Of a stretch of 64,000 nucleotides of DNA, positions 1,675 to 62,900 are shown one piece after another (within the stretch, counting starts at the first letter, position 1; the number at the start of each line of letters is the position of its first letter). The stretch is taken from NCBI RefSeq assembly GCF_006345805.1, contig NC_043001.1:89528001-89592000 (forward strand). Reading direction: 5' to 3'. The position numbers were made by a program, and so were the translations under genes. The stretch comes from Octopus sinensis. Taxonomy: Eukaryota. A model generated the notes under the pieces. The model ran no database searches. It saw only the letters and a list, made by a program, of their open reading frames with translations, and was not told the DNA's origin.

Positions 1675-1749
1675 TTGTCAAATATGATGATTTAAGCACT
1701 GGGCTATGACTAAATGTCTGATTCTAGTGTGCTTCACTGATTTTGACAA
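1675..1749 (+). ncRNA. SNORD88-like: Box C/D snoRNA, SNORD88/snR76-like, copy A
   Basis: 8-bp terminal stem ttgtcaaa/tttgacaa; C box ATGATGA 1684-1690; guide AGCACTGGGC 1695-1704, then T and D'-like ATGA; D box CTGA 1737-1740. Guide is antisense to conserved 28S GCCCAGUGCU. Confidence 0.88.
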
Positions 1750-2404
1750 GTTTTTTTAAATATTTGTTACTACAGCTATTTTATTTTGATAATTTGACAT
1801 GAGAAATTGCTTGGGGATCTAAATTTTTCTGCTCGTTCTTTCCAATCAATCAATCAATCCAGTCAGTATTGTATCACTTGAGATGTTAACCTCAGATTAA
1901 TTCATGGACTACATTGGTGACTTGCAGCTATGTCTCCATTTGACACCTCATTGACCAATGTGAGATCTGAAGTCATGAATACCATTGTACATTGCAGCTA
2001 AGTGTATTATGTCCTCATTCTGTGGGGATTAGGTTTCACAGCAATAACGATTAATCACTGTACCAATATTGTGAACATACTACTTGTACAATATTTAGAT
2101 TTGCCATCCTCTTGTCCTTCAGTTTTTGTTCATTAGTAAATTGTACATCTAACAAATTAATTCAAGTGTCATATTCTGGCAGTAAACTTGGGCACCTATA
2201 GTTGATAATTAATTTGAAATTGTCTTCTAAATGTATTGTGATGTTCTTTGCTCAGATATGCCAGTCTGTGAAATTAATTCCTTTAGATGGCTTATGACTT
2301 AATATTTGTATCTGCTGTAGGAGTTGGATTTTTGATGAGTATAAACAAACAGGTTAGATTAGATAGAGTTTGTAGAAGGTTTGATATGCTATAATGTAGG
2401 TGTC

Positions 2405-2460
2405 TATCGAATATGATGTCTTAGCACCAAGCTGTGAGTGAACACTTGATTCTAATTTCA
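2405..2460 (+). pseudogene. Degenerate SNORD88-like copy
   Basis: atcgaatATGATGTcttagcaccaagctgtga...ttgattctaat aligns to the intact copies, but the C box and guide are mutated and no D box or stem is seen. Confidence 0.55.
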
Positions 2461-2832
2461 TTTCTTCATATTTTCTGCATTATTGGTGGGCTGATGTTAT
2501 TATTGTGTATCTATTTGATATTTTATGTGAAATATTGTTGAATTAGGTGTTTATGGTTTCTGAAAGTTTTTGATATATGAAACTGTGGAACAGAAGAGCT
2601 AGCTTCACATAAATTAATCATTCCTTGTATATGTTGTAAGTAGTAGAAACCATAGGTTTAACTTTTAATAACTGAAGGGCATCTAGTCTTGTTCATTGAA
2701 GTTTTTTGTTCAAATTGTTCATGGGCTGGCTTAATTTGCTTTATCTCTCTTTAAGATCAATTACATCCAACATATTGGTCAGATAACTGAGAATTAATTG
2801 CCTTCTGTATGCTTTAACACATTAGCATTTAA

Positions 2833-4574
2833 CCCTTTCGTTACTATATTTCTGACCAAAATACACCCCTCATGAGTTTCAATTAAATTCTAAAATAATC
2901 ATGAATTTAGGCTTGTTTCATTAAATAACTGTAACTTTTTTACTTATCAACATATTAATGTGATATTTGGAACATAATTAAAGAAAGGGTTCTTAATCAA
3001 TTCTATTGGATAACTTTTGTCTCAAAGTGACTTTGATTACAGGTAAATCCAGGTAAATTGAGCAAAAGGTAAAAATATTAAAATTTTGTTTAAACATCAC
3101 CATAGAAAATGAATCATCAGCTAATATTCAAATGGGTATGCAACAAAATTTTGATAAAGAAGAATTGTGCACATCACTAGATTATCAGTTGTATTTAATG
3201 CACAACAGGTGTACCATAAAGGTGGAATATACTGAAATCCACCGCAAGTTTGACCGAACTAAAGAAACCAGTCAAAAAATAATATACGGCCCTGGTTATG
3301 GTATGGAAGTGATAAATTCCAGACCACATCATTCCCTAGGCCATGCTGACTAACATTATTTTCCCTGTATAAAAACTAAATCCACGCAATACCCAGTATT
3401 TGCTTCACAAATTTTCCGAAATTTGAACCCCCATTTTGTGTTTGTTTACATTCTGCGTAAGTTTGTTTCCGCATTGATTTCTTCAAACAATAACTTCCAG
3501 ACCACGTCATACCCTAATTGATTGACAACAGCTGCTTTGATTAGCCATTCCGAATCCTTCTCAAGACTGATACATTTCAATAACCACTAAATAATCACAC
3601 TTTCCATTTTATTTTTGCTATTAACCATCCTCACAACCCCCTTCGTGTCTATGATGGGGCCATGAACTATAGATAAAACTGTAGAATGAAAGAACATGTA
3701 AATCATTTGGATGTTATTGAATTATGTGGTCAAATATGATGACTTAAGCACTGGGCTATGACTGATTTTGATTCTAATGTGCTTCACTGACTTTTGACCA
3801 GGTTTAGCTTATTGAAAAAATACACCTTCACGATAAGGTCTGGCCTTGTACCTTGTGGTCCATGCTGACTAACATTAGTTTCCCTGTATAAAAACTAAAT
3901 CCACAACAGTAGCCAGTATTTGCTTCACAAATTTTCCAAACTTTGAACCCCCATTTTGTGTTTGTTTACAATCTGCGTAAATTTGTTTTCGAAGTGATCG
4001 CTTCAAACTAGCATACTGAAAAAAATAAAAGTCTAATGGTTTCACATAGACTATAGATAAACTTTATCTCAGAAAAATTACTAATAAAAACATTTTTAAA
4101 GTTTTTTTACTTCATTCCTATGTAAAATCGTCTTCGCTGTCGCCATTGCTGATTTGTTTCTTCAGAATCGCTTTCATTTTCGGATAAAAAAAATCCTATT
4201 CATTATTTTGTACACCACGTGCTTTAAGACCTCATGCATTCTTTTTCTCGATATCTCCCTATTTTCCGTTGGAAAAGCTTTAAATTCGGAATCAATGCTT
4301 GATAACATGAAACTCCTATCCATTTTCAAAGTTGAAGAAAAATCGATGCCGAAAAAAATGTGGAGAAAAATCTCCCAAAATTCACTGAGTTGAGATATCA
4401 CGTCAAGCAATGTCGGATACTATAAGCTAACTATTTACAAAGTGAAATCGCATGTTTTAACGAATGTACCAATGAGATTTGGGTTCAAATTTACATTTAA
4501 ATATCAATAGGTTCTCACGGCCGGGTTGGTATTATAAACCAAAGAATTTTTCGGCTGGGTTAGTAACGAAAGGG
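2833..4574. mobile_element. piggyBac-type non-autonomous element (MITE), copy 1, carrying a ~343-bp insert with a snoRNA
   Basis: TTAA target site 2829-2832 and 4575-4578; TIR CCCTTTCGTTACT/AGTAACGAAAGGG; internal ~170-bp tandem subrepeat; homologous along its length to 9553-10963. Confidence 0.88.
3727..3800 (+). ncRNA. SNORD88-like: Box C/D snoRNA, SNORD88-like, copy B (inside the MITE)
   Basis: Stem tggtcaaa/tttgacca; C box 3736-3742; guide AGCACTGGGC; D box CTGA 3787-3790. Confidence 0.85.
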
Positions 4575-4620
4575 TTAAACTGGCCAGATCCAGCCTCACA
4601 CACCTTACCTGAATCATTCT

Positions 4621-4850
4621 TACTCTTTTACTTGTTTCAGTCATTTGACTGCGGCCATGCTGGAGCACCGCCTTTAGTCGAGCAAATCGGCCCCGGGACT
4701 TATTCTTTGTAAGCCCAGTACTTATTCTATCAGTCTCTTTTGCTGAACCGCTAAGTGACGGGGACGTAAACACACCAGCATCGGTTGTCAAGCAATGCTA
4801 GGGGGACAAACATACATATATACGACAGGCTTCTTTCAGTTTCCATCTGC
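4621..4850 (-). mobile_element. SINE 3' portion (abundant family, also at 43066 and 50605)
   Basis: ttactcttttacttgtttcagtcatttgactgcggccatgctggagcaccgcc... is the reverse complement of the 3' half of the copy at 43066-43470. Confidence 0.8.
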
Positions 4851-5304
4851 TATTGCCCTGGGCATTGATCTAAAAATTAATAATCACATCGAATTCTCAA
4901 AAATATAAGATAATGTGTGATTAATTCAGAAATGTAAATATATAAGCATTACATTTGAAAAAAGAAATCTGAATTGTATTTATGATTTTGGCTGATACAA
5001 CTAAAAGGTCGAGTTATATTACAACATTAACTGTACCATGAAATTACATTGAACAGGTTCCTTGCAGAATTATATTCTTTATTGCAGGAAATTTTTCTGC
5101 TTTATGACCGTTTCCTGAAGTAATCTGATCTAATTTGTATTGCTAAGTGACTAATAGTAGACACAGGAAAGAATTGACCTATTAGAGGTTGCAGAATGTG
5201 TGTGTTTGTATATGTTTAGATGAGCACAAAAGGGATATCAAATATGATGTACAAACCTGTTAGTCATGGGTTGTAGAAGAATATTTGGGTGTTATTGAAT
5301 TATT

Positions 5305-5377
5305 TGGTCAAATATGATGACTTAAAGCACTGGGCTATGATTTACTGATTCTAGCGTGCTTCACTGATTTTTGACAA
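5305..5377 (+). ncRNA. SNORD88-like: Box C/D snoRNA, SNORD88-like, copy C
   Basis: Stem gtcaaa/tttgac; C box 5314-5320; guide AGCACTGGGC; D box 5364-5367. Confidence 0.85.
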
Positions 5378-5954
5378 GTTTCTTTCAATTTCACTACAGC
5401 TAGTTGGTTTTGATAATTTGATTAAGAGATAATAGTCTGAGTCGTCTAAAGAAAATATGAACGAAACTAATGAATCAATAAATAGCTTGGTGGTCTGTGT
5501 TTGCACTTTGCTTATTCTTTCAAACTAACCTATATCTGAGACAACCTCTTTGCATTTATCAGCTTAGAGGCAAAGTCAGATTTTGAAACCAATTGACATT
5601 TTATCACCTGAAACTATAGACTTTTTGACCCCTGGTTATTGCAAGGACTGCTTTGGTGACCTGCACCTGCAGTATTTTTGTTAATCCAAATGTATGGTTG
5701 TGTTAATGATAGCATTGCTGATATTGCCCAGTGAATATCTTTATAAGGCCATGAAGATCAAATGTCCAAAGAGATCTGGGGTTTAGGAACTCTTGGCATG
5801 CTATCAGTTGAGTAGTTTGGAGTTTTGCATATATAGCCATATTATTTCAGTCTCTTATTTGCTTAATAATAATAGTGTATGTCATGTGAAGAGCATTTAT
5901 TTAAAACTGTAGAATGAAAGAACATGTAAATTATTTGGATGTTACTGAATTATG

Positions 5955-6028
5955 TGGTCAAATATGATGACTTAAGCACTGGGCTATGACTGATTCTGAT
6001 TCTAATGTGCTTCACTGACTTTTGACCA
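5955..6028 (+). ncRNA. SNORD88-like: Box C/D snoRNA, SNORD88-like, copy D
   Basis: Stem tggtcaaa/tttgacca; C box 5964-5970; guide; D box 6015-6018. Confidence 0.87.
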
Positions 6029-6341
6029 GGTTTAGCTTATTGAATGACACCACTCTTACAGTGGGCAGGATGAGATTTGAAGTTATGGCTATATATGTCT
6101 ACTGTAGCCCTTCTGTCAGCTTAAATATGCTTTCTGCTTTATGACCACTTCCTGAAGTAATCTGATCTAATTTGTATAGCTAAGTGACTAATAGTAGACA
6201 CAGGAAAGAATTGACCTATTAGAGGTTGCAGAATGTGTGTGTTTGTATATGTTTAGATGAGCACAAAAGGGATATCAAATATGATGTACAAACCCGTTAG
6301 TCATGGGTTGTAGAAGAATATTTGGGTGTTATTGAATTACT

Positions 6342-6413
6342 TGGTCAAATATGATGACTTAAGCACTGGGCTATGATTTACTGATTCTAGCGTGCTTCAC
6401 TGATTTTTGACAA
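6342..6413 (+). ncRNA. SNORD88-like: Box C/D snoRNA, SNORD88-like, copy E
   Basis: Stem gtcaaa/tttgac; C box 6351-6357; guide; D box 6400-6403. Confidence 0.85.
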
Positions 6414-6990
6414 GTTTCTTTCAATTTCACTACAGCTAGTTGGTTTTGATAATTTGATTAAGAGATAATAGTCTGAGTCATCTAAAGAAAATATGAACGA
6501 AACTAATGAATCAATAAATAGCTTGGCGGTCTGTGTTTGCACTTTGCTTATTCTTTCAAACTAACCTATATCTGAGACAACCTCTTTGCATTTATCAGCT
6601 TAGAGGCAAAGTCAGATTTTGAAACCAATTGACATTTTATCACCTGAAACTATAGACTTTTTGACCCCTGGTTATTGCAAGGACTGCTTTGGTGACCTGC
6701 ACCTGCAGTATTTTTGTTAATCCAAATGTATGGTTGTGTTAATGATAGCATTGCCGATATTGCCCAGTGAATATCTTTATAAGGCCATGAAGATCAAATG
6801 TCCAAAGAGATCTGGGGTTTAGGAACTCTTGGCATGCTATCAGTTGAGTAGTTTGGAGTTTTGCATATATAGCCATATTATTTCAGTCTCTTATTTGCTT
6901 AATAATAATAGTGTATGTCATGTGAAGAGCATTTATTTAAAACTGTAGAATGAAAGAACATGTAAATTATTTGGATGTTACTGAATTATG

Positions 6991-7064
6991 TGGTCAAATA
7001 TGATGACTTAAGCACTGGGCTATGACTGATTCTGATTCTAATGTGCTTCACTGACTTTTGACCA
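6991..7064 (+). ncRNA. SNORD88-like: Box C/D snoRNA, SNORD88-like, copy F
   Basis: Stem tggtcaaa/tttgacca; C box 7000-7006; guide; D box 7051-7054. Confidence 0.87.
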
Positions 7065-7172
7065 GGTTTATCTTGTTGAATGACACCACTCTTACAGTGG
7101 GCAGGATGAGATTTGAAGTTATGGCTATATATGTCTACTGTAGCCCTTCTATCAGCTTAAATATGAGTGTTA

Positions 7173-7310
7173 ATGGCAGTGCAGCAGATTGCCCAGAGAA
7201 TGTTTATGTATTGCCATATTAGATATAGTATGGCCAATGGTGACTTAACTATACATTCCAACTTATGCTTTTATCAGATACTAGATGTCCAGTGTCGTCA
7301 TATAACAGAA
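7173..7310 (+). ncRNA. Candidate box H/ACA snoRNA (weaker)
   Basis: 11-bp stem atggcagtgca/tgtattgccat; ANANNA (ATAGTA) at 7225-7230; second stem atggtgac/gtcgtcat; ACA at 7305-7307; 138 nt. The upper stems are weak. Confidence 0.33.
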
Positions 7311-7832
7311 GCTCAGCCTGTAGGGAATTGGTTCACACCAATAAAGGAAAAAGAATTCATTGAATCAATGTCAGAAACAAAGGTTTTATATGTATCACTC
7401 AGCAGTATTTAGATTCACCAACTGCTGGTATATGGGTTCAGGTTTTTGATCTTTTATCAAGTATTCATATAAAAAATGATTAGTTGAATGAAGTGTTACA
7501 AAGTTTGGTCATCTACAGTTTATTGGAGTTTCTTGTGATTCTTTTTGATGTTGTGTGAAACTGCAGACTGGTAAAAGTTTATTGTAATAAATTTAATAGC
7601 TTTACATTATTTGAGATTCTTTGCTGAAAATTGTTTTTCTTTAAAAGCCAGTAGGATATACTGAGTTCATTTGAGTGAATATTAACAACCACTAGCAAAT
7701 CTACCTATCTACGATGGAGGCATAAAATGAGGGAGAGAAGTCATAACAGCAGTATGTATTGAGAAATGTGTAAATGGACTTGATAAATTGCTGGGTGATG
7801 TCTTAGAGAAATCACATTGTTGGTGATACAGC

Positions 7833-8852
7833 ATTCTATTGCAGCTATATGATGTGTTTGTGACTAAGTGACATGTGATAATGATTCACTCCCGAACTGA
7901 AATAGGCTCCCAGCTTCTGTATTATGAATGGTTTTGTGGACCACTCCTAACAAAAGCCAGAGCTTCCTTTGGCCACTACATAAAAATTTATTAAGAAAAG
8001 AATGTTATTTAGATATACTTTTATTTTAGTTATTTACACTATCTTACACTTGTTAATACTCTTATACATTCAAAGTTCACAAATTTCCTTATTTAAATTA
8101 TGAATTGTATTCCTTTCAGTAATATCAATGATTACAAAACTTCTTTGTAGACAATATTTTCTGTTTGGTCAAATTACTGAAGTCACTACTCCTAGTGACG
8201 TATAACTGGCTGTGTAAACATTGGAGTGGGTAAAAATACACCTTCACAATAAAGTCTGGCCCTGTGCCTTGTTTACTGTGAATGTGCAAGCAGAATCATT
8301 AGGGTTGCAAAAAATCAAACTAAGATTTATCTGTCATTGTTGTTTTCAAATAATGTCTGGATGTTCTGGTAACGTGGTTTATTTTGATTGACAAAACTGA
8401 CAACATTGATTGACAACAGCCGCTTTGATTAGCCATTCCGAATCCTTCTCAAGACTGATACATTTCAATAACCACTAAATAATCACACTTTCCATTTTAT
8501 TTTTGCTATTAACCATCCTCACAACCCCCTTCGTGTCTATGATGGGGCCATGAACTATAGATAAAACTGTAGAATGAAAGAACATGTAAATCATTTGGAT
8601 GTTATTGAATTATGTGGTCAAATATGATGACTTAAGCACTGGGCTATGACTGATTCTGATTCTAATGTGCTTCACTGACTTTTGACCAGGTTTAGCTTAT
8701 TGAAAAAATACACCTTCACAATAAGGTCTGGCCCTGTACCTTGTGGTCCGCAAAACCATTCATAATACAGAGGCTGGGAGCCTATTTCAGTGCAGGAGTG
8801 AATTGTCATCACATCACTTAGTCACAAACACGTCATATAGCTGCAATAGAAT
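7833..8852. repeat. Inverted repeat, ~110-bp arms at 7833-7944 and 8743-8852
   Basis: attctattgcagctatatga...ttttgtggaccac is the near reverse complement of gtggtccgcaaaaccattc...tcatatagctgcaatagaat. Confidence 0.9.
8615..8688 (+). ncRNA. SNORD88-like: Box C/D snoRNA, SNORD88-like, copy G
   Basis: Stem tggtcaaa/tttgacca; C box 8624-8630; guide; D box 8675-8678. Confidence 0.87.
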
Positions 8853-9531
8853 ATGAAAATCCAGAGTTGCTCGTGGTCAGTGAATATTTAATAAAAATGC
8901 AAGGTAGTTTATCAATTCAAAAATCGATATCCATCAAATAATCATACTCTATGATTTTTTAATGCTAAAAACCTTCCTGGCAACTGTCTTAGTAATCGCT
9001 CAAAATATCGTAACCATTAGTCCAGCTGTCTGGCTGTGAAGAGGGAACAAAGACAGACAGGTGGGCATAATGCCCATTATAGTAAGATAGCAAATCTGCC
9101 CATCTACAATGGGAAATACAGGGATAGTATTGCAAATCTAAACCCCCTAAATTCGCCAAATATATGGTGGGGAAATCTAGAGTTAATCCTCGTCGTTAGA
9201 TTTTTTTACAGAAAAAATCAAAGGTGATTTATTAATACAAAACTCAATATCCACTAAATAATCATACTTTTTCACATTTTTCTTATAAACCTTCCTGATT
9301 ACCTCTTTCATAATCTTGAAAAGCATTGTAACCATGGTCCAGCCATGGAAAGGGAACAGACAGACAAATGGACATAATGCCCATTATAGTAAGATGAATG
9401 TATTTAGTTGATCCAACTGTATCAACCAAAATGTTTATAATAATTAGTCTATGAAACTGAAGAACATAATCAAAGAATTTTGGGTGTACTGTATAAGGGT
9501 TATAAAAAATTTTCGTTTGGTGTCATTGAAT

Positions 9532-11021
9532 TGGTCAAATATGATGACTTAACCCTTTCGTTACTATATTTCTGACCGAAATACACCCCTCATGAGTTTC
9601 AATTAAATTCTAAAATAATCATGAATTTAGGCTTGTTTCATTAAATAACTGTAACTTTTTTACTTATCAACATATTAATGTGATATTTGGAACATAATTA
9701 AAGAAAGGGTTCTTATCAATTCTATTGGATAACTTTTGTCTCAAAGTGACTTTGATTACAGGTAAATCCAGGTAAATTGAGCAAAAGGTAAAAATATTAA
9801 AATTTTGTTTAAACATCACCATAGAAAATGAATCATCAGCTAATATTCAAATGGGTATGCAACAAAATTTTGATAAAGAAGAATTGTGCACATCACTAGA
9901 TCATCAGTTGAATTTAATGCACAACAGGTGTACCATAAAGGTGGAATAAACTGAAATATTGGAATCCACCGTAAGTTTGACCGAACAAAAGAAATCGGTC
10001 AAAAAATAATATATGGCCCTGGTTATGGTATGGAAGTGATAAATTCCAGACCACATCGTTCCCTAGGCCATGCTGACTAACATTATTTTTCCTGTATAAA
10101 AACTAAATCCACGCAGTATCCAGTATTTGCTTCACAAATTTCCCAAACTTTGAACCCCGATTTTAGGTTTGTTTACAATTTGCGTAAGTGTGTTTCCACA
10201 TTGATCGCTTCAAACAATAACTTCCAGACCACATCGTACCCTAAGCCATGCTGACTAACATTAGTTTCCCTGTATAAAAACTAAATCCACAACAGTACCC
10301 AGTATTTGCTTCACAAATTTCCCAAATTTTGAACCCCGATTTTGGGTTTGTTTACAATCTGCGTAAGTTTGTTTCCGAAGTGATTGCTTCAAACTAGCAT
10401 ACTGAAAAAAATAAAAGTCTAATGATTTCACTTCCTAAGAAAGGCTATAGATAAACTTTATCTCCTCAGAAAAATTTTAAAAGTTTTTTTACTTCATTCC
10501 GATGTAAAATCGTCTTCGCCGCTTTGTTTCTTCGGAAAGTGCTGCTTTCATTTTCGAATAAAAAAATATTCATTATTTTGTACACCACGTGCTTTAGTAC
10601 CTATTTCATTCTTTTTCTCGATATCTTCCTATTTTCCGTTGACAAAGCTTTAAATTCGGAATCAATGCTTGATAACACGAAACTCCTATCCATTTTCAAA
10701 GTTGAAGAAAAATCGAAGCCGAAAAACATGTGGAAAAAAATCTCCCAAAATTCACTGAGTTGAGATATCACTTCAAGCACTGTTGGATACTATAACTTAA
10801 CTATTTACAATGTGAAATCACATGTTTTAACGAATGTACCAACGAGATTTGGGCTCAAATTTACATTTAAATAACAATGGGTTCTAACGGCCGGGTATGG
10901 CCGGGTTGGTACTTTGAACCAAAAAATTTTCGGCCGGCTACGGCCGGGTTAGTAACGAAAGGGTTAAAGGCTTGGCTATGATTCATTATTTTGATTCTAG
11001 TGTGCTTCGCTGATTTTTGAC
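9532..11021 (+). pseudogene. SNORD88-like copy H split by a MITE insertion
   Basis: 5' half tggtcaaatATGATGAcTTAA (9532-9552) and 3' half TTAAaggcttggctatga...gtgcttcgCTGAtttttgac (10964-11021) flank the MITE. The guide is also mutated. Confidence 0.85.
9553..10963. mobile_element. piggyBac-type MITE, copy 2 (no insert)
   Basis: TTAA duplicated at 9549-9552 and 10964-10967; TIR CCCTTTCGTTACT/AGTAACGAAAGGG; the empty site can be rebuilt from the snoRNA halves. Confidence 0.92.
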
Positions 11022-13035: not shown

Positions 13036-13254
13036 CCCTTTAGTGTTCAGATTATTCTATCAAACATAATGCTTATTGATTCCCATTGATTTGAATTAAT
13101 CATGTAGTATCTCATATCTTCAAGATCTTGATGGTGTAATTACTTAATGTAGAATAACATTGTAGAGTAGGTGTGAGGGCCTAAATCTGGTCAGTTTGAA
13201 CATGAAACAGATTAAATATTTTGGCCGGATATGGCCGGTTTAAATACTAAAGGG
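13036..13254. mobile_element. Short piggyBac-type MITE (~220 bp family)
   Basis: TTAA|CCCTTTAG ... CTAAAGGG|TTAA; opposite-orientation relative at 55859-56074. Confidence 0.85.
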
Positions 13255-15347
13255 TTAAATGAACAATTTATAGAATTAAATTGAAATGTATACCAGGTGT
13301 ATTCTGACCTATGCAAATATGGAACAGTAGGTGTTAAAATGATGGTTAATCAAGGAACAAAGTGTCCATGAACATTTATTTACAGGGCCTCCAAAGCTGG
13401 TGGACAGAAGGGAAAAAGGTATCTTCAAATTAGCAATCCAGCCTAAATGCTTGCAACTGAGTTTAATCTTTAAATTTTAATGGTTGTCACTTGATCTGAG
13501 AAAACAGCTTGCACAGACGGTTTTTTACTGATCAGTGTTTGTGCTGCACATTAGCTCACTCCTTTCATCAAATAGGCATTTCCTATACAGGTGCACAGTG
13601 TGCTACACATCAGTTGTCACTAATCATACAGCTACATGAGATAAAGTTCTGCTCAAGAGCATGAGGCATCCATTCCAACTTCCTTTGAATTCCATTAATC
13701 CACTACCTTGAACTGGAACTTTTCTTTTTCTTTCTCAACCCTGAAAAGTGAAGTTGATCATGGTGGGATCTGAACTCAGAGAGAAAAAAACCCAATCCCA
13801 TGAAGCATTTTGTCTGGCATTAACAACTTTGCCAACTTCTGATTAGAAATATTATTAAAAAGGCACTCACACTTAGTCATCAAAGACCTACTTTTCCACC
13901 AACCACAGATACTTTACTTATATGTTATATTTGTTGAAGATAATTTTTGAATTCATGCTGAATTAACTAGATGATACCAACCTGTCGAAGACGGCCTCTG
14001 GTCCTGAATACTAACAATCAACCTCCATTAAATTCCTCTAAAATGTTTGTAATTAAGCATCAACATGTCAAAAGTTGAAATATACTGCCTTATTTTGAAA
14101 ATAAATTTGTTATTAAGCAGGTGTTTGGGACATGAATTAGCATGAAATGCTCTTTTTTAAAGCGATGAAGACTGCTTTAAAACAAGTTTGTATCATAGAA
14201 CTAGGTGTGATTTTGTGCAGGTCAGTATAAAAAAAAAACTCGAGAATTTTACAGAGTGAAATTTATTAATGGCAAAATATATATTACAATTGGCAATTTT
14301 ATGAATGTTTTAAATTTTGCCTCATTTAACTGTTAATCCTTAGTTTATTCAATGTCCATTTTTCAAAATTAGCAAGGGTTGGACAGGCCACTTGTTGAAA
14401 GCAATATTTTATGGCTGAATAATCTTGCTGTCTATTGATCTTCCCTTACAAAGCTTGGGACGGTAGTGAAGAAGTAAATTAGGTCTTTGACATGTGAAAG
14501 TAGGTGTATGAATATTGAAGTTCTAAAATGTAGTTTAACAAAGAAGCTTGCCATATAAGTATGCAAGTGTGTTTCCTTGTCATATAGCATGATAGTTGTA
14601 AATGAGTGTCACTGTCATACAAGCAGTACCCTTTGTTTCCAGTCTTATGAGAAACATGTTTGGCCACAGTGAAATATTACCTTGCTCAGAAACAGTTGCA
14701 TGTTGGCAACAGAAGGGGCATTTGGTCATGGAAACTGTCTCAACAAATTTTGTATGACCCATACAAACCTGAGAAAGTGGACATTATAACTATGATAATG
14801 GTTGCAGAGTGAAACATAGTCAACATAAGCTAGACTACTGATCTGCATCCACTAAGCTGTGGTTGAGAAGTTTGCTTCCTGACAACATGGTTTGAGTTGA
14901 ATCCCACTGTGTGGCACTTTGGGCAAGTGTTTTCTACAATAGCCCAGACTGATCCAATCTTTCAGTGGATTTGGTTGGCAGAAACTCAAAGCAGCCTGTC
15001 ATATTCATGTTTGTGGCTCTTTGTCTTGACATTGCATTGTAGTTGTAAACCAGTGTTACTGTCTTATAAGTGGTGTTGTTCATCTCCAATCCTGTGGAAA
15101 TGCTTGATGGGGTATCTGGCCATAGAAAATCAGCTTGAATTCTGTCTGACCCATGCAAGCATGGAAAAGTGGATGTTAAAAAATGACAATATAATTATTA
15201 CAGAGAGATTAAATATATTTTGAAAATGTTTGCCAAAGAGTAGCAACAGGGTTTAGACCAGATCTTGAACATCCCAGAAGCACTGTACTGGTCTCTACTA
15301 TTCTACAGTAAGTTTCCAATCCTACACTCAAGGAACCATGAGTTTTA

Positions 15348-22290: not shown

Positions 22291-23766
22291 CTGTTTAGTA
22301 TAAATTTACAGATGGTTCTATGTGTATGTATATACAAACTATGTACACACACACACACACACATTCACTCTTCTATATGAATCATAACATACAGGATTCC
22401 CACTTTGTCTACAAACATTCCACAAAAACAGATAAATACACACTGACTCTGACACTAGCACTTGCATATCAACTCTAACAGCAGCACAACCACACATACA
22501 AACTAATTCTTTTGCACACATACATAGGTTCTAACATATATATTCATATACCCTTAAAGTAACACCAGTATACACATATATATATTATACATGTTAACAC
22601 ACATTGTAATCCTTAGATATAATTGCATCAGCATATCAGTAGTTTGGAGAGGTGTAGATGACTGGGAAGTAGAGGTACATTGGTGGTTAGCTGAGATTGT
22701 AATGAGGGCATGAGTTTTAGTTGAGTTATTTTATTGCAGCTATGTTCCCTATGTTTTCTGAGAGGTTAGTTACTAAGCTAATTTATCCTGGGACATTACT
22801 ACAGTGAAAGTTTTGGTGTTGACCCAGCTATAGTATCTTCTAACTCTTTGTTGTAAAGTGCCTAAGAGAAAGATAGGGAGAGATATTGAGTATGTGAAAG
22901 AGAAAGAGTGTGTAAGTGTTTGATGTGTTTTATGTGTGTGAAAGAGAGAGGCAGGAAGAGCAATAGACTTTGCTTTCTCGTTCCAAAACCAGCCTTCATC
23001 TAGCCATCAATGCTTTCATTTTCAAGAAGCAGTTTGACCATTGCCTAATTAAGATAACACATCCTCTAACCAATCACTTGACCTCTATAGTACTTGAAGA
23101 CAGTTAACTGGCTGGATATTGTTCATAGCTATTCAGACTATCTTTGTTTATAGGAGACCAAAACCTTCTTCCTAGGTATGTTCCTTCACATCTTTCATAC
23201 AACTAAATCCCATAATCTACAAAACACCTATGTGAAGCAGTACAAAGAATACAGTCTGTAATTCCTTGATAAAGTAACCAACCACAGTCAGCTAAGATTT
23301 TAATGGACACCACAACACAGATAAAACAACCCCCATAAAATCAAAAGAAGCTGTTAAGCATTACAGTTTGAAAACTTTCTTCCCACCTAAATTTCAGCCA
23401 GAATTTGTGGTCTGGTGTTAAGCTGGCTTGTAATAGCCATACAGAATATTCTGCTCCTACCCTCCATAGCTCACTTAACCCTTTTGTTAACATATTGTAG
23501 TGTGATGGAAGAAAAGGACAACAGAAAAAGAAGCAAACGGGAGAAAGAAATACAAAAGGCCTTACCTGTTGACCTCGGCGGAATGAGTGGTCATTCTCAC
23601 GAAATAGACACGTCTTTTCTCCCTGCTCGAACTGCCCACACGTGCTTCCTGCCCATGCATGCCTCTTTCACTCTTCCGCCGGCCCCTGCAGTCTTCACTC
23701 TCTTTTTGCCTCATCTACCATCCTCTCCACCAACACCACATAGCTCATCACAGCCCATAACACCGC

Positions 23767-26523
23767 TGTAGCAATATCGTCTCTCATTGCTATCTTCACT
23801 GTTTGAGAAGAGTATTAAGAATGACCTCGGTCGAGATTACAAACAGCTTTGGCTAGTTTAACATTGTTGTAAACACTAATTCGATGGCTGACACGTTGGT
23901 CTCTACTACGCTCGCACCGCTGGTTATAACTTGGCGCAAAATGTCTCGACTTATTTTCGCGCCATAGTCCAAGCAGCCAATCACAGCTTTCCATTTCTGA
24001 AGTTCACTGGGAGCCTGGTGAAGCTTATAAAACAAGGTTTCTCAGAAAAAATATTCGTCTTAGGTTTCCAGTCCTTCTCAGGGCGAACCTCTGACCACAC
24101 AGAGCTCGTCTTAGGTTTCCAGTCCTTCTCAGGGCGAACCTCTGACCACACAGAGCTCGTCGTAGGCTTTTAGTTCTTTTAAGAACTAAGTCTCTGACCA
24201 CACAGAGAATACTCGACCAAGTTCCAGTTTCGAGGCAAGCGACCACCATTAATACAAGATGTTACAGATACCTCTCATACTGTTAGTGTGAAAAATCACC
24301 ATGAAGAAAACGGTTACAAGATATCTATAACTAGAGAAACATAACCAAGCAGAACATATAATGAAGAAGCAGCAAGAACCAATCGACAAACATCGAAGAT
24401 TTAAATGTACACGAGACAACTACAGATTCAACTATAGCGGTTAGGTGAAATTCTCACCACGAAGAAAACGGCTACAGAAACATGTCTGGAAGTATATTCA
24501 GATCAAGAGAAAGATAAACACAACGAGTGGTTCAATTAGTCTCAACTGCGACACGCAATATCTTGATATGGAAGTCTGACGCTGTACCTCATAAACGGTA
24601 AATCAATTCACTGTTCTTGGGTTCTAGTTTCTTCTAAGAACTACCTTAAGCCATCTGTTATTACCTGTTGCCAAGCCGATACCAACAACATTAACTGTGA
24701 ATCAAATCCCAACGTCATTTCACTGGTCAGTACCTTTTTACGCCTAACGAACACACAGACACAAAAACATGCGAACACTTACAAACTTCCAACATCAAAC
24801 ATGATTGTAAAATATGTAAAATAAATAATGTATATATATTAAAAAGAAATCTTGTTGTCATTCCAAACTTATGTGTATTGCCGCTGCATGTAAAATATAG
24901 TCAGTAAAACATATTAATAAGAATAGGATCATTACTATTTTTATACTGGTGACCCCTTTAATACGCAGGACTTCTGATATACTGCGCGGCCAACGGTAGA
25001 CATAAGTTACGGAATTGACACAAGAGAACGCTGAAGGATGAACTTTTTAAGAAAAACAAAAAAAAAGAGATATATATATATATAATAATGTCAATTTTAT
25101 CGCCGTTTTGTCGTAGACAAATTATAAGAATCGGGTCAGTACCTATTTTTATACTGGTGACCCCTTTAATACGCAGGACTTCTGATATACTGCGCGGCCA
25201 ACGGTAGACATAAGTTACGGAATTGACACAAGAGAACGCTGAAAGGTGAACTTTTTAAGAAAAACAAAAAAAATAGATATATATAATAATGTCAATTTTA
25301 TCGCCGTTTTGTCGTAGACAAAACGTCTGGCAAGAGGCTATATGTAGCAATATCGTCTCTCATTGCTATCTTCACTGTTTGAGAAGAGTATTAAGAATGA
25401 CCTCGGTCGAGATTACAAACAGCTTTGGCTAGTTTAACATTGTTGTAAACACTAATTCGATTGGCTGACACGTTGGTCTCTACTACGCTCGCACCGCTGG
25501 TTATAACTTGGCGCAAAATGTCTCGACTTATTTTCGCGCCATAGTCCAAGCAGCCAATCACAGCTTTCCATTTCTGAAGTTCACTGGGAGCCTGGTGAAG
25601 CTTATAAAACAAGGTTTCTCAGAAAAAATATTCGTCTTAGGTTTCCAGTCCTTCTCAGGGCGAACCTCTGACCACACAGAGCTCGTCTTAGGTTTCCAGT
25701 CCTTCTCAGGGCGAACCTCTGACCACACAGAGCTCGTCGTAGGCTTTTAGTTCTTTTAAGAACTAAGTCTCTGACCACACAGAGAATACTCGACCAAGTT
25801 CCAGTTTCGAGGCAAGCGACCACCATTAATACAAGATGTTACAGATACCTCTCATACTGTTAGTGTGAAAAATCACCATGAAGAAAACGGTTACAAGATA
25901 TCTATAACTAGAGAAACATAACCAAGCAGAACATATAATGAAGAAGCAGCAAGAACCAATCGACAAACATCGAAGATTTAAATTGTACACGAGACAACTA
26001 CAGATTCAACTATAGCGGTTAGGTGAAATTCTCACCACGAAGAAAACGGCTACAGAAACATGTCTGGAAGTATATTCAGATCAAGAGAAAGATAAACACA
26101 ACGAGTGGTTCAATTAGTCTCAACTGCGACACGCAATATCTTGATATGGAAGTCTGACGCTGTACCTCATAAACGGTAAATCAATTCACTGTTCTTGGGT
26201 TCTAGTTTCTTCTAAGAACTACCTTAAGCCATCTGTTATTACCTGTTGCCAAGCCGATACCAACAACATTAACTGTGAATCAAATCCCAACGTCATTTCA
26301 CTGGTCAGTACCTTTTTACGCCTAACGAACACACAGACACAAAAACATGCGAACACTTACAAACTTCCAACATCAAACATGATTGTAAAATATGTAAAAT
26401 AAATAATGTATATATATTAAAAAGAAATCTTGTTGTCATTCCAAACTTATGTGTATTGCCGCTGCATGTAAAATATAGTCAGTAAAACATATTAATAAGA
26501 ATAGGATCATTACTATTTTTATA
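23767..26523 (+). mobile_element. Non-autonomous LTR retroelement: LTRs 23767-24945 and 25343-26523, ~400-bp non-coding interior
   Basis: Near-identical 1.18-kb direct repeats starting TGTAG; target duplication CCGC at 23763-23766 and 26524-26527; PBS TGGTGACCCC right after the 5' LTR; CCAAT, TATA-like and AATAAA motifs inside the LTR. Confidence 0.85.
24947..24956 (+). promoter_or_regulatory. Primer-binding site, tRNA-Trp type
   Basis: TGGTGACCCC is complementary to the 3' end of eukaryotic tRNA-Trp (...GGGGUCACCA). It is repeated near 25156. Confidence 0.7.
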
Positions 26524-26828
26524 CCGCTAACACCACACATATTTAGGTTGAAATATAGTGTTTGTTTCAGTTAACGAGCATTTTATTAAAATAACTTTGT
26601 CATTACTAAAATGGTAGTTTGGAATATAAATTAGCATGGGATTTTGATGGACGGTTTTAAAAGTGGATCACTTTAAAAAGGCATTTGTATCATAAAAACA
26701 AAAGCAGTTCTAGGTAGGTCAGTGTCAAAAGTGCTTGACTAATGACATTCCTCTTAAAATAGCATCCACATTAGTTGCTGGTTTTTGCTTATATATCCAC
26801 TTTACATACATACAAACAATGTTTGTAA

Positions 26829-43065: not shown

Positions 43066-43470
43066 GGTGCAGGCATGACAGTGTAGTAAGAAGCTTGCTT
43101 CCTAACCACATGGTTCAAGGTTCAGTTCCATTGCATGGCACCTTGGGCAAGTCTCTTCTATAGCCTGAGGCCAACCAAAGTGGATTTGGTAGATGGAAAC
43201 TGAAAGAAGCCCATCGTATATATATATGTATCTACGTATGTATGTATGTATGTACGTATCTTTGTGTTTGCCCCCACCTCACTGCTTGACAACCGATGTT
43301 GGTGCATTTACATCCCCGTAACTTAGCAGTTCAGCAAAAGGCTGATAGAATAAGTACTAGGCTTTAAAAAAGTCCTGGGGTTGATTTGTTCAACTAAAAC
43401 CCTTCCAGGCGGTGCTCCAGCGTGGTCACAGTTAAATGACTGAAACAAGTAAAAGAATAAAAGAATATAT
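43066..43470 (+). mobile_element. Full-length tRNA-head SINE
   Basis: ggtgcaggcatg...ggttcagttcc head, body, and aaaagaat tail after (TA)n. Confidence 0.8.
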
Positions 43471-43952: not shown

Positions 43953-46296
43953 CACCAAGGAAATGACTGAAGACCGAGTCCTATGGAAGTGTGCTGTGCA
44001 TGAGAGGACCCGGCAGGACTAGTCAGGCCATATCCCGTGGCCCCTACCTGGGACGTAGTCGATCCACCTGTGCATACCTTCCTTCTTGTGACACTTGTGA
44101 AGACCTGCTGAGACAAGTGAAAATCAAAATCAATCAAAATAGATGAACATCAATGGAATTTGTATCTTTGTGGTACCAGTGCCTGTGGCACACAAGAAAA
44201 CCATCCGAACGTGGCCGTAGCCAGTACCGCATCGACTGGCCTCCGTGCTGTGGGAACATGGCGGCACATAAAAACACCATCCGAAGACCCGGCAAGACTA
44301 GTCAGGTCATAACCCATGGGCCCTACCTGGGACGTAGTCAGTCCACCTGTACATACCTTCCGACTTGTGAAGACCTGCTGAGGCAAGTGAAAATCAAATC
44401 AAATCAAATCAAAACAAATCAAAATAGATGAACATCAATGGAATTTGTATCCTTGTGGTACCAGTGCCAGTGGCACACAAGAATCCATCCGAACGTGGCC
44501 GTAGTCAGTACCGCTTGTGGTACCAGTGCCGGTGGCACACAAGAATCCATCCGAACGTGGCCGTAGTCAGTACCGCATCACTGGCCATCGTGCTGTGGGC
44601 ACATAACAAACACCATCCGGTCGTGGCCGTTCGCCAGCCTCATCTAGCACCTGTGTCGGTGGCACATAAAAACACCTTCCGAAGACCCGGCAAGACTAGT
44701 CAGGCCATAAACCATGGCCCCTACATGGGACGTAGTCAGTCCACCTGTGCATACCTTCCCCCTTGTGATACTTGTGAAGGCCTGTTGAGGCAAGTGAAAA
44801 TCAAAGGCCTGTTGAGGCAAGTGAAAATCAAAATCAAAATCAAATCAAAACAAATCAAAATAGATGAACATCAATGGAATCTGTATCTTTGTGGTACCAG
44901 TGCCGGTGGCACACAAGAGAAAACCATCCGAAAGTGGCCGTAGCCAGTACCGCATCGACTGGCCTCCGTTCTGTGGGCACATGACAAACACCATCCGATC
45001 GTGGCCGTTCGCCAGCCTCATCTAGCACCTGTGTCGGTGGCACATAAAAACACCATCCGAAGACCCGGCAAGACTAGTCAGGCCATAACCCATGGCCCCT
45101 ACCTGGGACGTAGTCAGTCCACCTGTGCATACCTTCCTTCTTGTGACACTTGTGAAGACCTGTTGAGGCAAGTGAAAATCAAATCAAAACAAATCAAAAT
45201 AGATGAACATCAATGGAATCTGTATCTTTGTGGTACCAGTGCCGGTGGCACACACTTTGTGGTACCAGTGCCGGTGGCACACATGAGAACCATCCGAACG
45301 TGGCCGTAGCCAGTTCCGCATCGACCGGCCTCCGTGCTGTGGGCACGTAACAAACACCATCCGATCATGGCCGTTCGCCAGCCTCATCTGGCACCTGTGT
45401 CGGTGGCACATAAAAAACACCTTCCGAAGACCCGGCAAGACTAGTCAGTCCACCTGTGCATACCTTCCTTCTTGTGACACTTGTGAAGACCGGTTGAGGC
45501 AAGTGAAAATCAAATCAAATCAAATCAAAATAGACAAAATAGATGAACATCAATGGAATTTGTATCTTGTGGTACCAGTGCCTGTGGCACACAAGAAATC
45601 CATCAGTGCCGTAGTCAGTGCGGTGGGCACATGACAAACACCATCCGATCGTGGCCGTTCGCCAGCCTCATCTAGCACCTGTGTCGGTGGCACATAAAAA
45701 CACCATCCGAAGACCCGGCAAGACTAGTCAGGCCATAACCCATGGCCTCTACCTGGGACGTAGTCAGTCCACCTGTGCATACCTTCCTTCTTGTGACACT
45801 TGTGAAGACCTGTTGAGGCAAGTGAAAATCAAAATCAAATCAAAACAAATCAAAATAGATGAACATCAATGGAATTTGTATCTTTGTGGTACCAGTGCCG
45901 GTGGCACGTGGCACATAAGAAAACCATCCGAACGTGGCCGTAGCCAATACCGCATCGACTGGCCTCCGTGCTGTGGGCACGTAACAAGCACCATCCGATC
46001 GTGGCCGTTTGCCAGCCTCATCTGGCACCTGTGTCGGTGGCACATAAAAACACCATCCGAGCGTGGCCGTCTGCCAGCCTCGTCTGGCACCTGTGTCGGT
46101 GGCACATAAAAACACCATCCGAGCGTGGCCGTCTGCCAGCCTCGTCTGGCACCTGTGTCGGTGGCACATAAAAACACCATCCGAGCGTGGCTGTCTGCCA
46201 GCCTCGTCTGGCACCTGTGTTGGTGGCACATAAAAACACCATCCGAGCGTGGCCGTTTGCTAGCCTCGTCTGGCACCTGTGTCGGTGGCACATAAA
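43953..46296 (+). repeat. Composite tandem array: six RTE-tail units plus 61-bp subrepeats
   Basis: gacccggc at 44007, 44286, 44684, 45062, 45429 and 45712; each unit ends in (AAATC)n; about four to five 61-bp repeats at 46030-46296. Confidence 0.9.
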
Positions 46297-46466
46297 ATCA
46301 CCCACTACACTCTCGGAGTGGTTGGCGTTAGGAAGGGCATCCAGCTGTAGAAACACTGCCAGATCTGACTGGACTGGTGCAGCTTTCGGGCTCCCCAGAC
46401 CCCAGTTGAACCGTCCAACCCATGCTAGCATGGAAAGCGGACGTTAAATGATGATGATGATGATGA

Positions 46467-50604: not shown

Positions 50605-50977
50605 TTTACTCTTTTACTTGTTTCAGTCATTTGACTGTGGTCATACTGGAGCACCGCCTTTAGTCGAACAAATCAGCCCCAAAACTTATTCTTTGTAAGC
50701 CTAGTACTATTGGTCTCTTTTGCCAAACTGTTAAGTTACAGGGATGTAAACACACCAACACTGGTTGTCAAGCAATGGTGTGGGGACAAACACACACACA
50801 CACACACATATATACATATATATGACAGGCTTCTTTCAGTTTCCTTCTACCAAATCCACTCACAAGGCTTTGGTTGGCCCGAGGCTATAGTAGAAGACAC
50901 TTTCCCAAGGTGCCACACAGTGGGACTGAACCCGGAACCATGTGGCTGGTATGTGAGCTACTTACCACACAGCTACT
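50605..50977 (-). mobile_element. SINE (same family as 43066)
   Basis: Reverse-complement homology across head and body. Confidence 0.8.
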
Positions 50978-55131: not shown

Positions 55132-55557
55132 GAAATTCGACAAAAAGTCAGTGAGATGCGATTGGAGGCTGAGAAGGCATCAAAGACAAAATCTCAAATA
55201 ATCGATGAGCTGCAAAACAGTAAAGTGCAGCAAGAAATGGAGATGAATAAATTGAACCGAAAAGTAGAGAGCCTCATTTTGAACATGGAAAAAACAATGG
55301 CTGATGTTGCAGCCTTCAAGAAGACCCAGTTCAATTTTGAAAAGAAACAATCACAGATTAAACATATGTTAAGTGATCTGACTGCACAAATTGAAAACAT
55401 CCAAGATAAGACATCTGTAATTCCAGTTGAATTGAAAAATGTAAAAATAGAATCCGATAATTTGAGCAAGGGCTTGGCTGAAATTAACATGCGAGACAAA
55501 ACGCTGCAACATAACTTGGAAACTATTAAACAAGAAGTTTTGTATGCACGTCAGAAG
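55132..55557 (+). CDS. PAN gene, long coiled-coil exon (142 aa)
   Basis: ttattctctttgaaag acceptor, AAG|gtatga donor, 426 nt, phase 0 to 0; heptad-rich K/E/Q/L sequence. Confidence 0.88.
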
Positions 55558-55858
55558 GTATGAAGTATTTTCCTTATCTTTAGGTACAACTTAGTAGTAA
55601 TGATATAATAGCTGTTATTTTTGGCTAACTTTGACCAGTCTACTTGAGCTAACTTATAACTCAAATTTAACTGATCGAGGTATCCATTTCACTGGTATTT
55701 CTACAAAAGGTTAGTCTTCTTTTTACTTTATTTGATTTGTGGAGCATGATGTTTTGAAGTTTAGAAGCTAAAAACATGTGGCTTGACATTTGTAACTCTT
55801 TTGACACTAACCTGCCTGAGACCGTTCTTGGTTTTAGGATACAAACTTCCTACATTAA

Positions 55859-56074
55859 CCCTTTAGCACTTAAACCAGTCATATCCAGCTAAAATAACTT
55901 ACCTGTATTATTTTCAAACTGGCCAGATCTGGCCTCTCTCACTTACCTACAATATTCTAAAGGTAAGCAATCATATATCCGATATCTCAAAGATACAAGA
56001 TAATACCTGATTAATTCAAACTAATGTGAATAAATAAGTATTACATTAGACAGAGAAATCTGAATGATAAAGGG
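55859..56074. mobile_element. Short piggyBac-type MITE
   Basis: TTAA|CCCTTTAG ... ATAAAGGG|TTAA. Confidence 0.85.
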
Positions 56075-61539: not shown

Positions 61540-62900
61540 CCAGATAATGTTACAACTTTTTGCTATCTTCTTCTAAAGTGTGTGCGCATACATATGTACA
61601 TATGCACACACACACGTTTGATGTTAGGTCAAGGATTTGCCTATTTGAATATTATGTAGTTACATTTTCAGAATATACTATGTTTTGGTGGAGATATTTG
61701 TAGTTGAGTGGTCAGTTGAGTTTCTGTAGTTTTATGTTTGAGTGTTGAAAATTTCTTGGAATGAGTTGCATTTTTTGCAGTTGATATTGGATAGGACTGG
61801 GCAAGATTTGGGTTGAATTAAAGACTGACTGAGTGGTGTTGAAAATTGGGTGATATTTATGTAATCTGGAGAAATGCTTTCTGATTAGGTTGAGGAAATA
61901 TTTAACCCTTTTGTTACCAACCTGGCCGAAACCAGCTCTGGCTCTGTAGTACAAATATCTTATTTTCATAAGTTTTGAATTAAAATCTTCCACCAAACCT
62001 TAGTCGCAATTTATGTTCCTAACACTAGCTTAATGATAACTAAGTTATTTCACTAAATTCTTTGTTATATTTAAAATTGATTGAAAGAAACACAGAGCAT
62101 CTCAAAATAAATACAGTAACAAAAGGGTTAATGTTGGTTGTGGTTACTTGTAAATTGCATGGTGAGTTGTACTAGGTGATTTTCATTTTTCTATTCTTAG
62201 TTTTAAGCTTTGTGATGGGATGTAGTTGACGTTTTCTTTGGAATCACTTAGTATAAGGATATTGTATGAGTATTCATTTTTTATTAAGGCAAGCTTTGAG
62301 GAAAATATTTCTCGGGTTTATTGCTTATGGAGGGTTATATCATTGAAAGATGTATATTTGTTGGGTTATTTTGTTAGATTTTCAAAATAAAATTTTTGCA
62401 AGGTGTGTCTAGAGTAAATTAATTATACACTTTTTCTATGTTCGTATTCACTGAGATTTTCACATTGGAGCCTTTCAGCAGAGAAGCCCTCATGAATATG
62501 TTTGTGGCTCAGGGATTCATGTTTTTGACAATGGGAAGCTTTCGTTCATGTAAAGGCCTCCTTCAACAAATTGTGATTTAGTGTTAAGAGTGTATAATTA
62601 AAATAGGCCAACCAGTTCACTTACCTCAGTGGATTTGTATGACTCCAAACTTATGGGAGAGTGTTTAACAGGATTTCTCTTTATCCTTACATTTCCATTG
62701 TTTGAAGAGGTAGATTTCTGACATGTATAATGTTCATGTCTTGTGCTGAGATAGTGGTGAATTGGTTGGCATGTGAAATTGTGAAATTACAAGGAATTCC
62801 TTTGAAATCAGTGTTTCGGCTTTTATGTTTCATGGATCTACCTCAAGAGAGAGATCAACCACTGAAGTTGACAACAGTATGGTTGCTATGTGCAATTAAG
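61540..62900 (-). mobile_element. Degenerate Penelope-like element, interrupted by a MITE
   Basis: FLNLIRKHFSRLHKYHPIFN resembles the segment between RT and GIY-YIG in Penelope-like elements. Confidence 0.55.
61906..62127. mobile_element. piggyBac-type MITE
   Basis: TTAA|CCCTTTTGTTAC ... GTAACAAAAGGG|TTAA. Confidence 0.88.

Follow-up and report, generated by a model that had tools for sequence, protein, structure and literature searches.

A piggyBac-type transposable element (TE) in the octopus genome carries near its middle a whole, apparently intact small nucleolar RNA (snoRNA) gene, most probably copied there from a nearby locus during DNA repair. We found this arrangement in a 64-kb window of Octopus sinensis DNA (NCBI RefSeq assembly GCF_006345805.1, contig NC_043001.1, positions 89,528,001 to 89,592,000 of the forward strand); all coordinates below count from the first letter of this window, which is the whole stretch that we analyzed. 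Of the two copies of the element in the window, copy 1 is loaded with a fragment of 342 nt and copy 2 is empty. The fragment matches a locus further downstream in the same cluster of snoRNA genes, which we call unit G; the snoRNA within the insert is copy B. We favor, with a probability of roughly 0.75, a local template-switch repair event that would have copied unit G into element copy 1 independently of transposase, the product being a single-copy Pack-TIR, a class of TEs with terminal inverted repeats (TIRs) that is known from other animals.

A snoRNA-containing fragment interrupts one element copy

We delimited the element copies by inverted-repeat and pattern searches. The following features define the loaded copy, its insert and its empty counterpart.

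2829-2832, + strand: left TTAA target-site duplication of element copy 1 (TIR/TTAA match)
2833-4574 (2829-4578 with TTAA): element copy 1, loaded; 1,742 bp including the insert
3312-4008, + strand: internal 178-bp tandem duplication in copy 1; unit a at 3312-3489, unit b at 3490-3517 plus 3860-4008
3518-3859, + strand: captured fragment, 342 nt assigned unambiguously; apparently copied from 8405-8749
4575-4578, + strand: right TTAA target-site duplication of element copy 1 (TIR/TTAA match)
9549-10967 including two TTAA (element proper 9553-10963): element copy 2, empty; 1,411 bp, with the empty site CCCTAA-G-CCATG at 10239-10250

Window self-BLAST and base-by-base comparison aligned 3517-3861 with 8405-8749 over 345 nt, with 0 gaps and 98.8% identity. 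The four differences between insert and source are all transitions (3533 T/C, 3768 T/C, 3832 G/A, and 3846 T/C). The insert is a real feature, and chance cannot account for it. At its edges, the bases 'a' (3517) and 'cc' (3860-3861) fit the insert and the element equally well, which amounts to 1 + 2 nt of microhomology. A preliminary description of this DNA, made from the letters, had reported an insert of ~343 bp, microhomology of 1-2 nt at these same bases and a match to 8405-8749 with about four differences; base-level comparison bore out each of these points.

The insert comprises 210 nt of upstream flank, a complete 72-nt snoRNA and 60 nt of downstream flank. Its breakpoint falls at 0.49 of the element length, 28 nt into the second unit of the 178-bp tandem repeat, leaving 685 bp and 715 bp of element sequence on either side and both termini complete. 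Only one element base was lost from copy 1 at the insertion site, a G equivalent to position 10245 in the empty copy. Neither poly(A) nor a target-site duplication is present at 3518-3859. The chimeric junction strings, …CATACCCTAATTGATTGACAAC… and …CCTTGTGGTCCATGCTGACTAA…, each occur once in the window.

The target without an insert, CCCTA[A/G]GCCATGCTGAC, is seen three times, at 10239-10256, 3333-3350, and 10060-10077. The first of these is the orthologous position in copy 2, which reads CCCTAA-G-CCATGCTGAC without interruption; the other two are the paralogous unit of the tandem repeat, which is uninterrupted in both element copies (CCCTAGGCCATGCTGAC). Because there are three uninterrupted witnesses of the target, the empty state is ancestral and the insert derived. 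We also considered whether copy 2 could be a deletion derivative of a loaded ancestor. We rejected this, since the paralogous unit is uninterrupted in both copies and copy 2 has an extra G.

The insert was apparently copied from a mosaic locus in the same cluster

Three features describe the source.

8405-8749, + strand: source locus, unit G; 345-nt match to the insert, itself a mosaic
8616-8687, + strand: snoRNA copy G, the apparent parent of copy B
7833-8852: 1,020-bp segment enclosing the source, bounded by 112-nt inverted repeats (7833-7944 and 8743-8852, 91% complementary)

Unit G is the unique parental match of the insert within the window. It has three parts: a unique stretch (8405-8561), a snoRNA core common to two other units of the cluster, D and F (8562-8704), and a segment that repeats 8232-8272 (8704-8744). 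This structure indicates that unit G itself arose by earlier copying of the 143-bp snoRNA core. The insert shares with units D and F only the 143-nt core, at 3674-3816, and its other 200 nt match unit G alone. It also carries the junctions that are private to G, 8561/8562 and 8704/8705, together with G's two private single-nucleotide polymorphisms (SNPs). Three of the four differences between B and G can be polarized, using D, F, or the 8232-8272 repeat, and in all three the derived state is in B. Finally, G runs on both sides into a context of its own (a 41-nt repeat and an inverted-repeat arm), and B ends exactly at element sequence. Because B has G's private junctions and SNPs and stops at element sequence, copying ran from G to B. 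The preliminary description had read the same direction from the mosaic junctions.

The right flank of G is an arm of the 112-nt inverted repeat, and the copied tract ends 6-7 nt into this arm. For the inverted repeats, we saw no target-site duplication and no further copies in the window.

The cargo resembles SNORD88 and belongs to a tandem snoRNA cluster

3728-3799, + strand: snoRNA copy B, a SNORD88/snR76-like C/D-box snoRNA with guide AGCACUGGGCU

Copy B is one of eight copies of a 72-nt C/D-box snoRNA that lie on the + strand within the first 11 kb of the window (1676-11021). The copies start at 1676, 3728, 5309, 5956, 6343, 6992, and 8616, and the eighth is split (9533/10968). They form two subtypes, type I (1676, 5309, 6343, and the split copy) and type II (3728, 5956, 6992, and 8616). 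Presumably, the cluster is an intronic array of a host gene. Copy B had been described as intact, and we found its boxes, guides, and terminal stem all present. The C box (AUGAUGA) is at 3737-3743 and the D box (CUGA) at 3788-3791, both guides are intact, and the terminal stem is 7-8 bp long, reading GGUCAAA/UUUGACC in the sequence and forming 8 pairs when its fold is predicted. The only change private to copy B is the U at 3768, directly 5' of the C' box, where the other type-II copies have C.

At gathering thresholds, Rfam gave no match in the window, rRNA included. Below threshold, the four type-II copies match SNORD88 with 32.7-33.3 bits (E = 3e-4 to 5e-4 over 12 kb), short of the 46 bits set for gathering, and the type-I copy at 5309 matches yeast snR76 when an E-value threshold is used. 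Weak Rfam matches to aspC, SNORA51, and mir-242 were dismissed as chance. The snoRNAs have in common with SNORD88 (RF00604) and yeast snR76 (RF01209), members of clan CL00071, the C/D-box architecture and, in the type-II copies, an identical 11-nt antisense element, which lies upstream of the D' box and equals the SNORD88 consensus. They differ from SNORD88 in their score (33 bits vs the threshold of 46), in length (72 nt vs a 91-position model), and in occurring as eight copies of two subtypes in 11 kb. On these similarities, the cargo is best described as a SNORD88-like snoRNA and a putative rRNA-methylation guide.

The snoRNA cluster also contains a tandem duplication of 1,036 bp (5094-6129 and 6131-7165) whose halves are 98.8% identical.

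The host is a non-autonomous piggyBac-type element with two independent insertions

In both copies, the element ends read TTAA, CCCTTTCGTTACTA ... TAGTAACGAAAGGG, TTAA, with perfect 14-nt TIRs; those of copy 1 (CCCTTTCGTTACTA) occupy 2833-2846 and 4561-4574. The 18-nt combination of TTAA and TIR, TTAACCCTTTCGTTACTA, occurs exactly at 2829-2846 (+), 4561-4578 (-), 9549-9566 (+), and 10950-10967 (-), compared to a chance expectation of 0.04 matches. The earlier statement that the TIRs and TTAA sites are intact thus holds at all four ends.

A TTAA duplication together with CCC...GGG ends is the terminal hallmark of the piggyBac superfamily, and by these features the host classifies as a non-autonomous piggyBac-type element. 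The open reading frames (ORFs) in the two copies are at most 79 aa long and differ between the copies, with no conservation. Within the window, we found no autonomous partner, that is, no ORF with a DDE_Tnp_1_7 transposase between the same ends. The preliminary description had called the element a piggyBac-type miniature inverted-repeat transposable element (MITE). The TIRs and the TTAA duplication uphold the first half of this name. The second half does not fit, as MITEs are usually <800 bp, noncoding, and present in high copy number, and this element measures 1,411 bp without the insert and has two copies in 64 kb.

The 178-bp internal tandem duplication is present in each copy. Divergence between the copies is uneven. 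The left 410 alignment columns (2829-3238 vs 9549-9957) are 0.75% different, or 99.3% identical, and the remaining 1,038 columns are 8.2% different, with several indels. This pattern suggests an old element family in which the left 410 bp represent a recent gene-conversion tract or have a recombinant origin. We asked if the perfect TIRs are a sign of recent activity and found the signal not significant: the left end lies in the 99%-identical tract, and P is ~0.05 for 36 nt at 8.2% divergence. We rejected one shared repair event as the origin of the 410-bp tract (2829-3238) and the insert (at 3518), as ~280 bp of clearly diverged sequence separates them. In 100-column windows, these 280 bp show roughly 6-8% mismatches and an 8-bp indel. 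Near the right end, two subterminal GGCCGGG-containing motifs have been lost in copy 1 relative to copy 2, and the loss of both may impair transposase binding to copy 1.

The second element copy severs the eighth snoRNA, copy H.

9533-9552, + strand: 5' part of snoRNA copy H (stem, C box, and TTAA), severed by element copy 2
10968-11021, + strand: 3' part of snoRNA copy H; D' guide decayed, with GGCUUGGCU instead of GCACUGGGCU

Joined with a single TTAA, the flanks of copy 2 restore a snoRNA whose alignment to the other snoRNA copies runs through the junction. Joining the flanks of copy 1 gives a weak match across the junction to another repeat. By their flanks, the two element copies are independent insertions. 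Since the sister element disrupted copy H within the same 11 kb, the locus compactly illustrates exchange in both directions between a piggyBac family and a tandem array of snoRNAs. A TTAA follows the C box in all eight snoRNA copies, and therefore each is a potential piggyBac target.

Several further observations concern these elements. Element copy 2 sits exactly at the TTAA after the C box of copy H (GAUGACUUAAGC), and the 3' half of copy H has a change next to the D box. Element copy 1 apparently sits within the end of a different repeat of TTAA type (TTTAACACATTAGCATTTAA on the left of the junction and ACTGGCCAGATCCAGCC on the right; 2810-2832 and 4575-4610), of which further copies lie at 13223-13259 and 55912-55958. 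A 230-bp piggyBac-type MITE at 61902-62131 (TTAA CCCTTTTGTTAC ... GTAACAAAAGGG TTAA) has ends related to those of the element, and two solitary TIR-like matches of related sequence lie at 23475-23492 and 56220-56237.

A local template switch best explains the capture

The anatomy described above can be accommodated by a repair accident. Element copy 1, already resident, would have suffered a break or a stalled replication fork near its middle, inside the 178-bp tandem repeat. The repair or replication machinery would have adopted a new template, unit G, which lies 4.9 kb downstream and is read on the same strand, copied 342 nt from it, and then returned to the element one base from the point of departure. 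The route may have been synthesis-dependent gap filling with template switching, or template switching at stalled forks (FoSTeS) or microhomology-mediated break-induced replication (MMBIR). The product would be a single-copy 'Pack-TIR' that needed no transposase. Since snoRNA B has kept its full set of boxes and guides and is oriented in sense with the cluster, the host transcript of its neighbors may also yield snoRNA B, which would provide one more gene copy.

Several features argue for this reading. The source is in cis, 4.9 kb away, and has the same orientation as the insert. The divergence of the capture (1.2%) is far below the 8.2% that separates the right-hand 1 kb of the element copies, and for this reason the capture should be much younger than the divergence of the element copies. 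Two other events in the cluster also show ~1% divergence, the 5094-6129/6131-7165 duplication and the 410-bp element tract, and the capture appears to be one of several recent local copy events. The position of the recipient site in a tandem repeat and the end of the tract in an inverted-repeat arm fit a replication or repair accident; both were noticed post hoc. The inverted-repeat structure around the source could dislodge a copying polymerase.

The features also agree with what is known of animal Pack-TIRs. A survey of 100 animal genomes catalogued 370 Pack-TIRs, among them members of the piggyBac superfamily (Tan et al. 2021, Nat Commun 12:4280, PMC8277862; Supplementary Data 1). Single-copy cases were attributed to transposition-independent gap filling, on the evidence of a bias toward sources in cis, a median microhomology of 2 bp, capture after insertion of the element, small gaps, and internal breakpoints (Tan et al. 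2021, PMC8277862). The survey required a non-TE insert of 100-5,000 bp, at least 10 bp of each terminus, and a parent with at least 90% identity and a length ratio of 80-120%; the parent also had to be the unique best genome match, with no TE within 100 bp (PMC8277862). In the octopus element, 342 nt lie between both element parts, and the parent is 98.8% identical over 345/345 nt. The loaded copy probably belongs to the single-copy Pack-TIRs, given its same-strand source in cis, its mid-element breakpoint, its 1 + 2 nt of microhomology, and its 1-nt loss. It shares with the class a close parent in cis that is >90% identical and of the same length, microhomology of ~2 bp, a tiny gap, and capture after the element was in place. 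It is unlike the class in two respects: in place of part of a protein-coding gene it carries a whole, apparently functional snoRNA gene, and its parent lies within the same tandem gene cluster as the element.

Four points weigh against a local, transposase-independent copy. First, microhomology had to be rejected as proof of the mechanism, as it is no more than chance would give: a simulation gave P values of ~0.46 (left junction), ~0.18 (right junction), and ~0.08 (the two jointly). Second, single-copy status is established for the 64-kb window only. Third, perfect TIRs and TTAA sites, together with Octopus piggyBac families that have inserted recently, make later mobilization possible. Fourth, the expression of copy B is predicted, and the correctness of the assembly presumed, from the assembled sequence.

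Transposition, RNA templates, and other origins are less likely

The preliminary description had gone further and proposed that the loaded element offers a Pack-MITE-like route for spreading snoRNAs. In its full form, this would mean transposition-linked capture, by gap repair or FoSTeST, into an element that has been or can be mobilized, a true Pack-MITE seeding SNORD88-like genes at new TTAA sites. We consider this unlikely. In its favor are the perfect 14-nt TIRs and TTAA duplications of the loaded copy and the fact that the family did transpose, with two independent insertions of which one, on joining its flanks, rebuilds a snoRNA. Multicopy animal Pack-TIRs also exist (PMC8277862), and the genus Octopus has piggyBac families with hundreds of recent insertions, recently active ones being reported in Octopus vulgaris (PMC13282606). 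However, each junction is single in the window, and multicopy, mobilized cases make up ~1% of animal Pack-TIRs (PMC8277862). Gap repair that aborts after excision usually costs the element sequence, whereas only 1 nt is missing here, and piggyBac excision is precise and would leave no internal break by itself. The missing GGCCGGG-containing motifs may further reduce the chance that transposase acts on copy 1. With single junctions and a gap-filling signature, the proposed spreading route finds no support in the window; the accompanying caution, that the window alone shows no later movement, was correct. More doubtful still is the notion that the loaded element remains a substrate of an active piggyBac transposase and has carried, or is carrying, a functional SNORD88-like gene into further introns.

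We also searched for the loaded element beyond the window. The junction strings TTAACCCTTTCGTTACTATATTTCTGAC and ACCCTAATTGATTGACAACAG and the TIR string had no match in JGI metagenome contigs, collections that almost certainly lack this genome, which makes the result uninformative. In IMG/VR, the 18-nt TIR and TTAA sequence had six matches (one unrelated phage gene), which diverged directly after the 18-mer; we rejected these as relatives of the element and regard them as chance matches. For a 44-aa ORF across the left junction, nothing was on record. We also concatenated 12 ORFs from the loaded element, the two junction ORFs among them, and compared them with 5.8 billion proteins; there was no match at E <= 0.001, which is likewise uninformative on this genome.

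Templated-insertion polymorphisms of transcribed sequence are known, and a host pre-mRNA or intron containing snoRNA G might have repaired the break, either through reverse transcription or as the template itself. Such an RNA-templated insertion would accord with the presumed transcription of the snoRNA host locus that contains the source and with the shared orientation of the copy. We regard it as very improbable, as poly(A), a target-site duplication, a 3' truncation pattern, and a spliced version of the source are all missing from the insert, which extends beyond the mature snoRNA by 210 nt on the upstream side and by 60 nt on the downstream side, unlike the snoRNA retroposons called snoRTs.

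A comparably small chance attaches to another origin, in which B and G both derive from a third locus outside the window or G derives from B. Our inspection was limited to 64 kb, and the polarized substitutions all fall on the B lineage, so that G, or a twin of G, would be near the ancestral state. However, the sequence around G extends on either side into a mosaic of its own, whereas B stops exactly at element sequence, and deriving G from B would need excision of exactly the non-element part.

Least likely is an assembly artefact, in which unit G was duplicated into the element by a mis-join or a chimeric read: the region is rich in near-identical repeats and hard to assemble, but four differences distinguish insert from source, both junctions are clean, and the element resumes in register one base on, whereas collapse or chimerism normally yields identical copies or broken collinearity.

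Relation to other routes of gene capture and snoRNA dispersal

Retroposition and local duplication are the main known ways in which snoRNA families arrive at new introns. SnoRNA genes reportedly reach new sites by way of mobile-element machinery, as is said of the snoRTs that Weber described in 2006 and the platypus snoRTEs that Schmitz described in 2008. Retroposed snoRNAs are RNA-mediated, have poly(A) or RTE tails and target-site duplications, and start near the ends of the mature snoRNA. The insert at 3518-3859 has neither a tail nor a target-site duplication, and its limits are not near the mature RNA ends; unlike the retroposons, it appears to be a DNA-level copy with 210 + 60 nt of flank.

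With FoSTeS/MMBIR and templated insertions at double-strand breaks, the capture shares a short copy from a few kb away in cis, 1-2 nt of microhomology, and near-zero loss at the recipient site. There is no difference in kind; the sole peculiarity here is to have a transposon as recipient and a snoRNA gene as cargo. Plant Pack-MULEs and Pack-MITEs likewise hold host sequence between the intact ends of a non-autonomous TIR element. Unlike the octopus element, which is of piggyBac type and occurs as a single loaded copy in the window, Pack-MULEs belong to the Mutator superfamily and are often multicopy (36% in rice, as quoted in PMC8277862).

As Pack-TIRs with piggyBac members have been known since 2021, what appears to be new here is the cargo only, a whole and apparently intact snoRNA gene. 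A text search of PMC8277862 and its supplements found no mention of snoRNAs, and our literature searches found no whole-snoRNA cargo in such an element. A complete snoRNA gene between intact transposon ends demonstrates that a DNA-transposon vehicle can at least be assembled. If the spreading reading were true, it would represent cut-and-paste dispersal of snoRNAs by a DNA transposon, distinct from retroposition. As it stands in the window, the loaded copy would be one more single-copy Pack-TIR, a class that usually originates free of transposition.

Other features of the window

Four further features lie outside the snoRNA cluster or between its members.

4620-4816, 43265-43460, and 50606-50796: three copies, 81-85% identical, of a repeat (…GTCATTTGACTGCGGCCATGCTGGAGCACCGCC…) resembling a short interspersed nuclear element (SINE)
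23767-24946 vs 25343-26524: direct duplication of 1.18 kb, 99.8% identical, spaced 1.6 kb, with internal 51-nt repeats
44000-46300: GC-rich (46%) complex tandem-repeat block with ~62-nt and longer periods and long spurious ORFs on both strands
55156-55563, + strand: 135-aa coiled-coil ORF ending at a GT donor-like site

The SINE-like copy at 4620-4816 is, we presume, similar to an octopus SINE. The coiled-coil ORF is likely a real exon. A 1.2-kb Logan contig from SRR11869391 encodes a protein 99% identical to its predicted product, and a homologue from ERR3431203 is 45% identical. At the DNA level, the SRR11869391 contig and the window have a mean column identity of 88%, gaps included, which points to a related species as the source of that contig.

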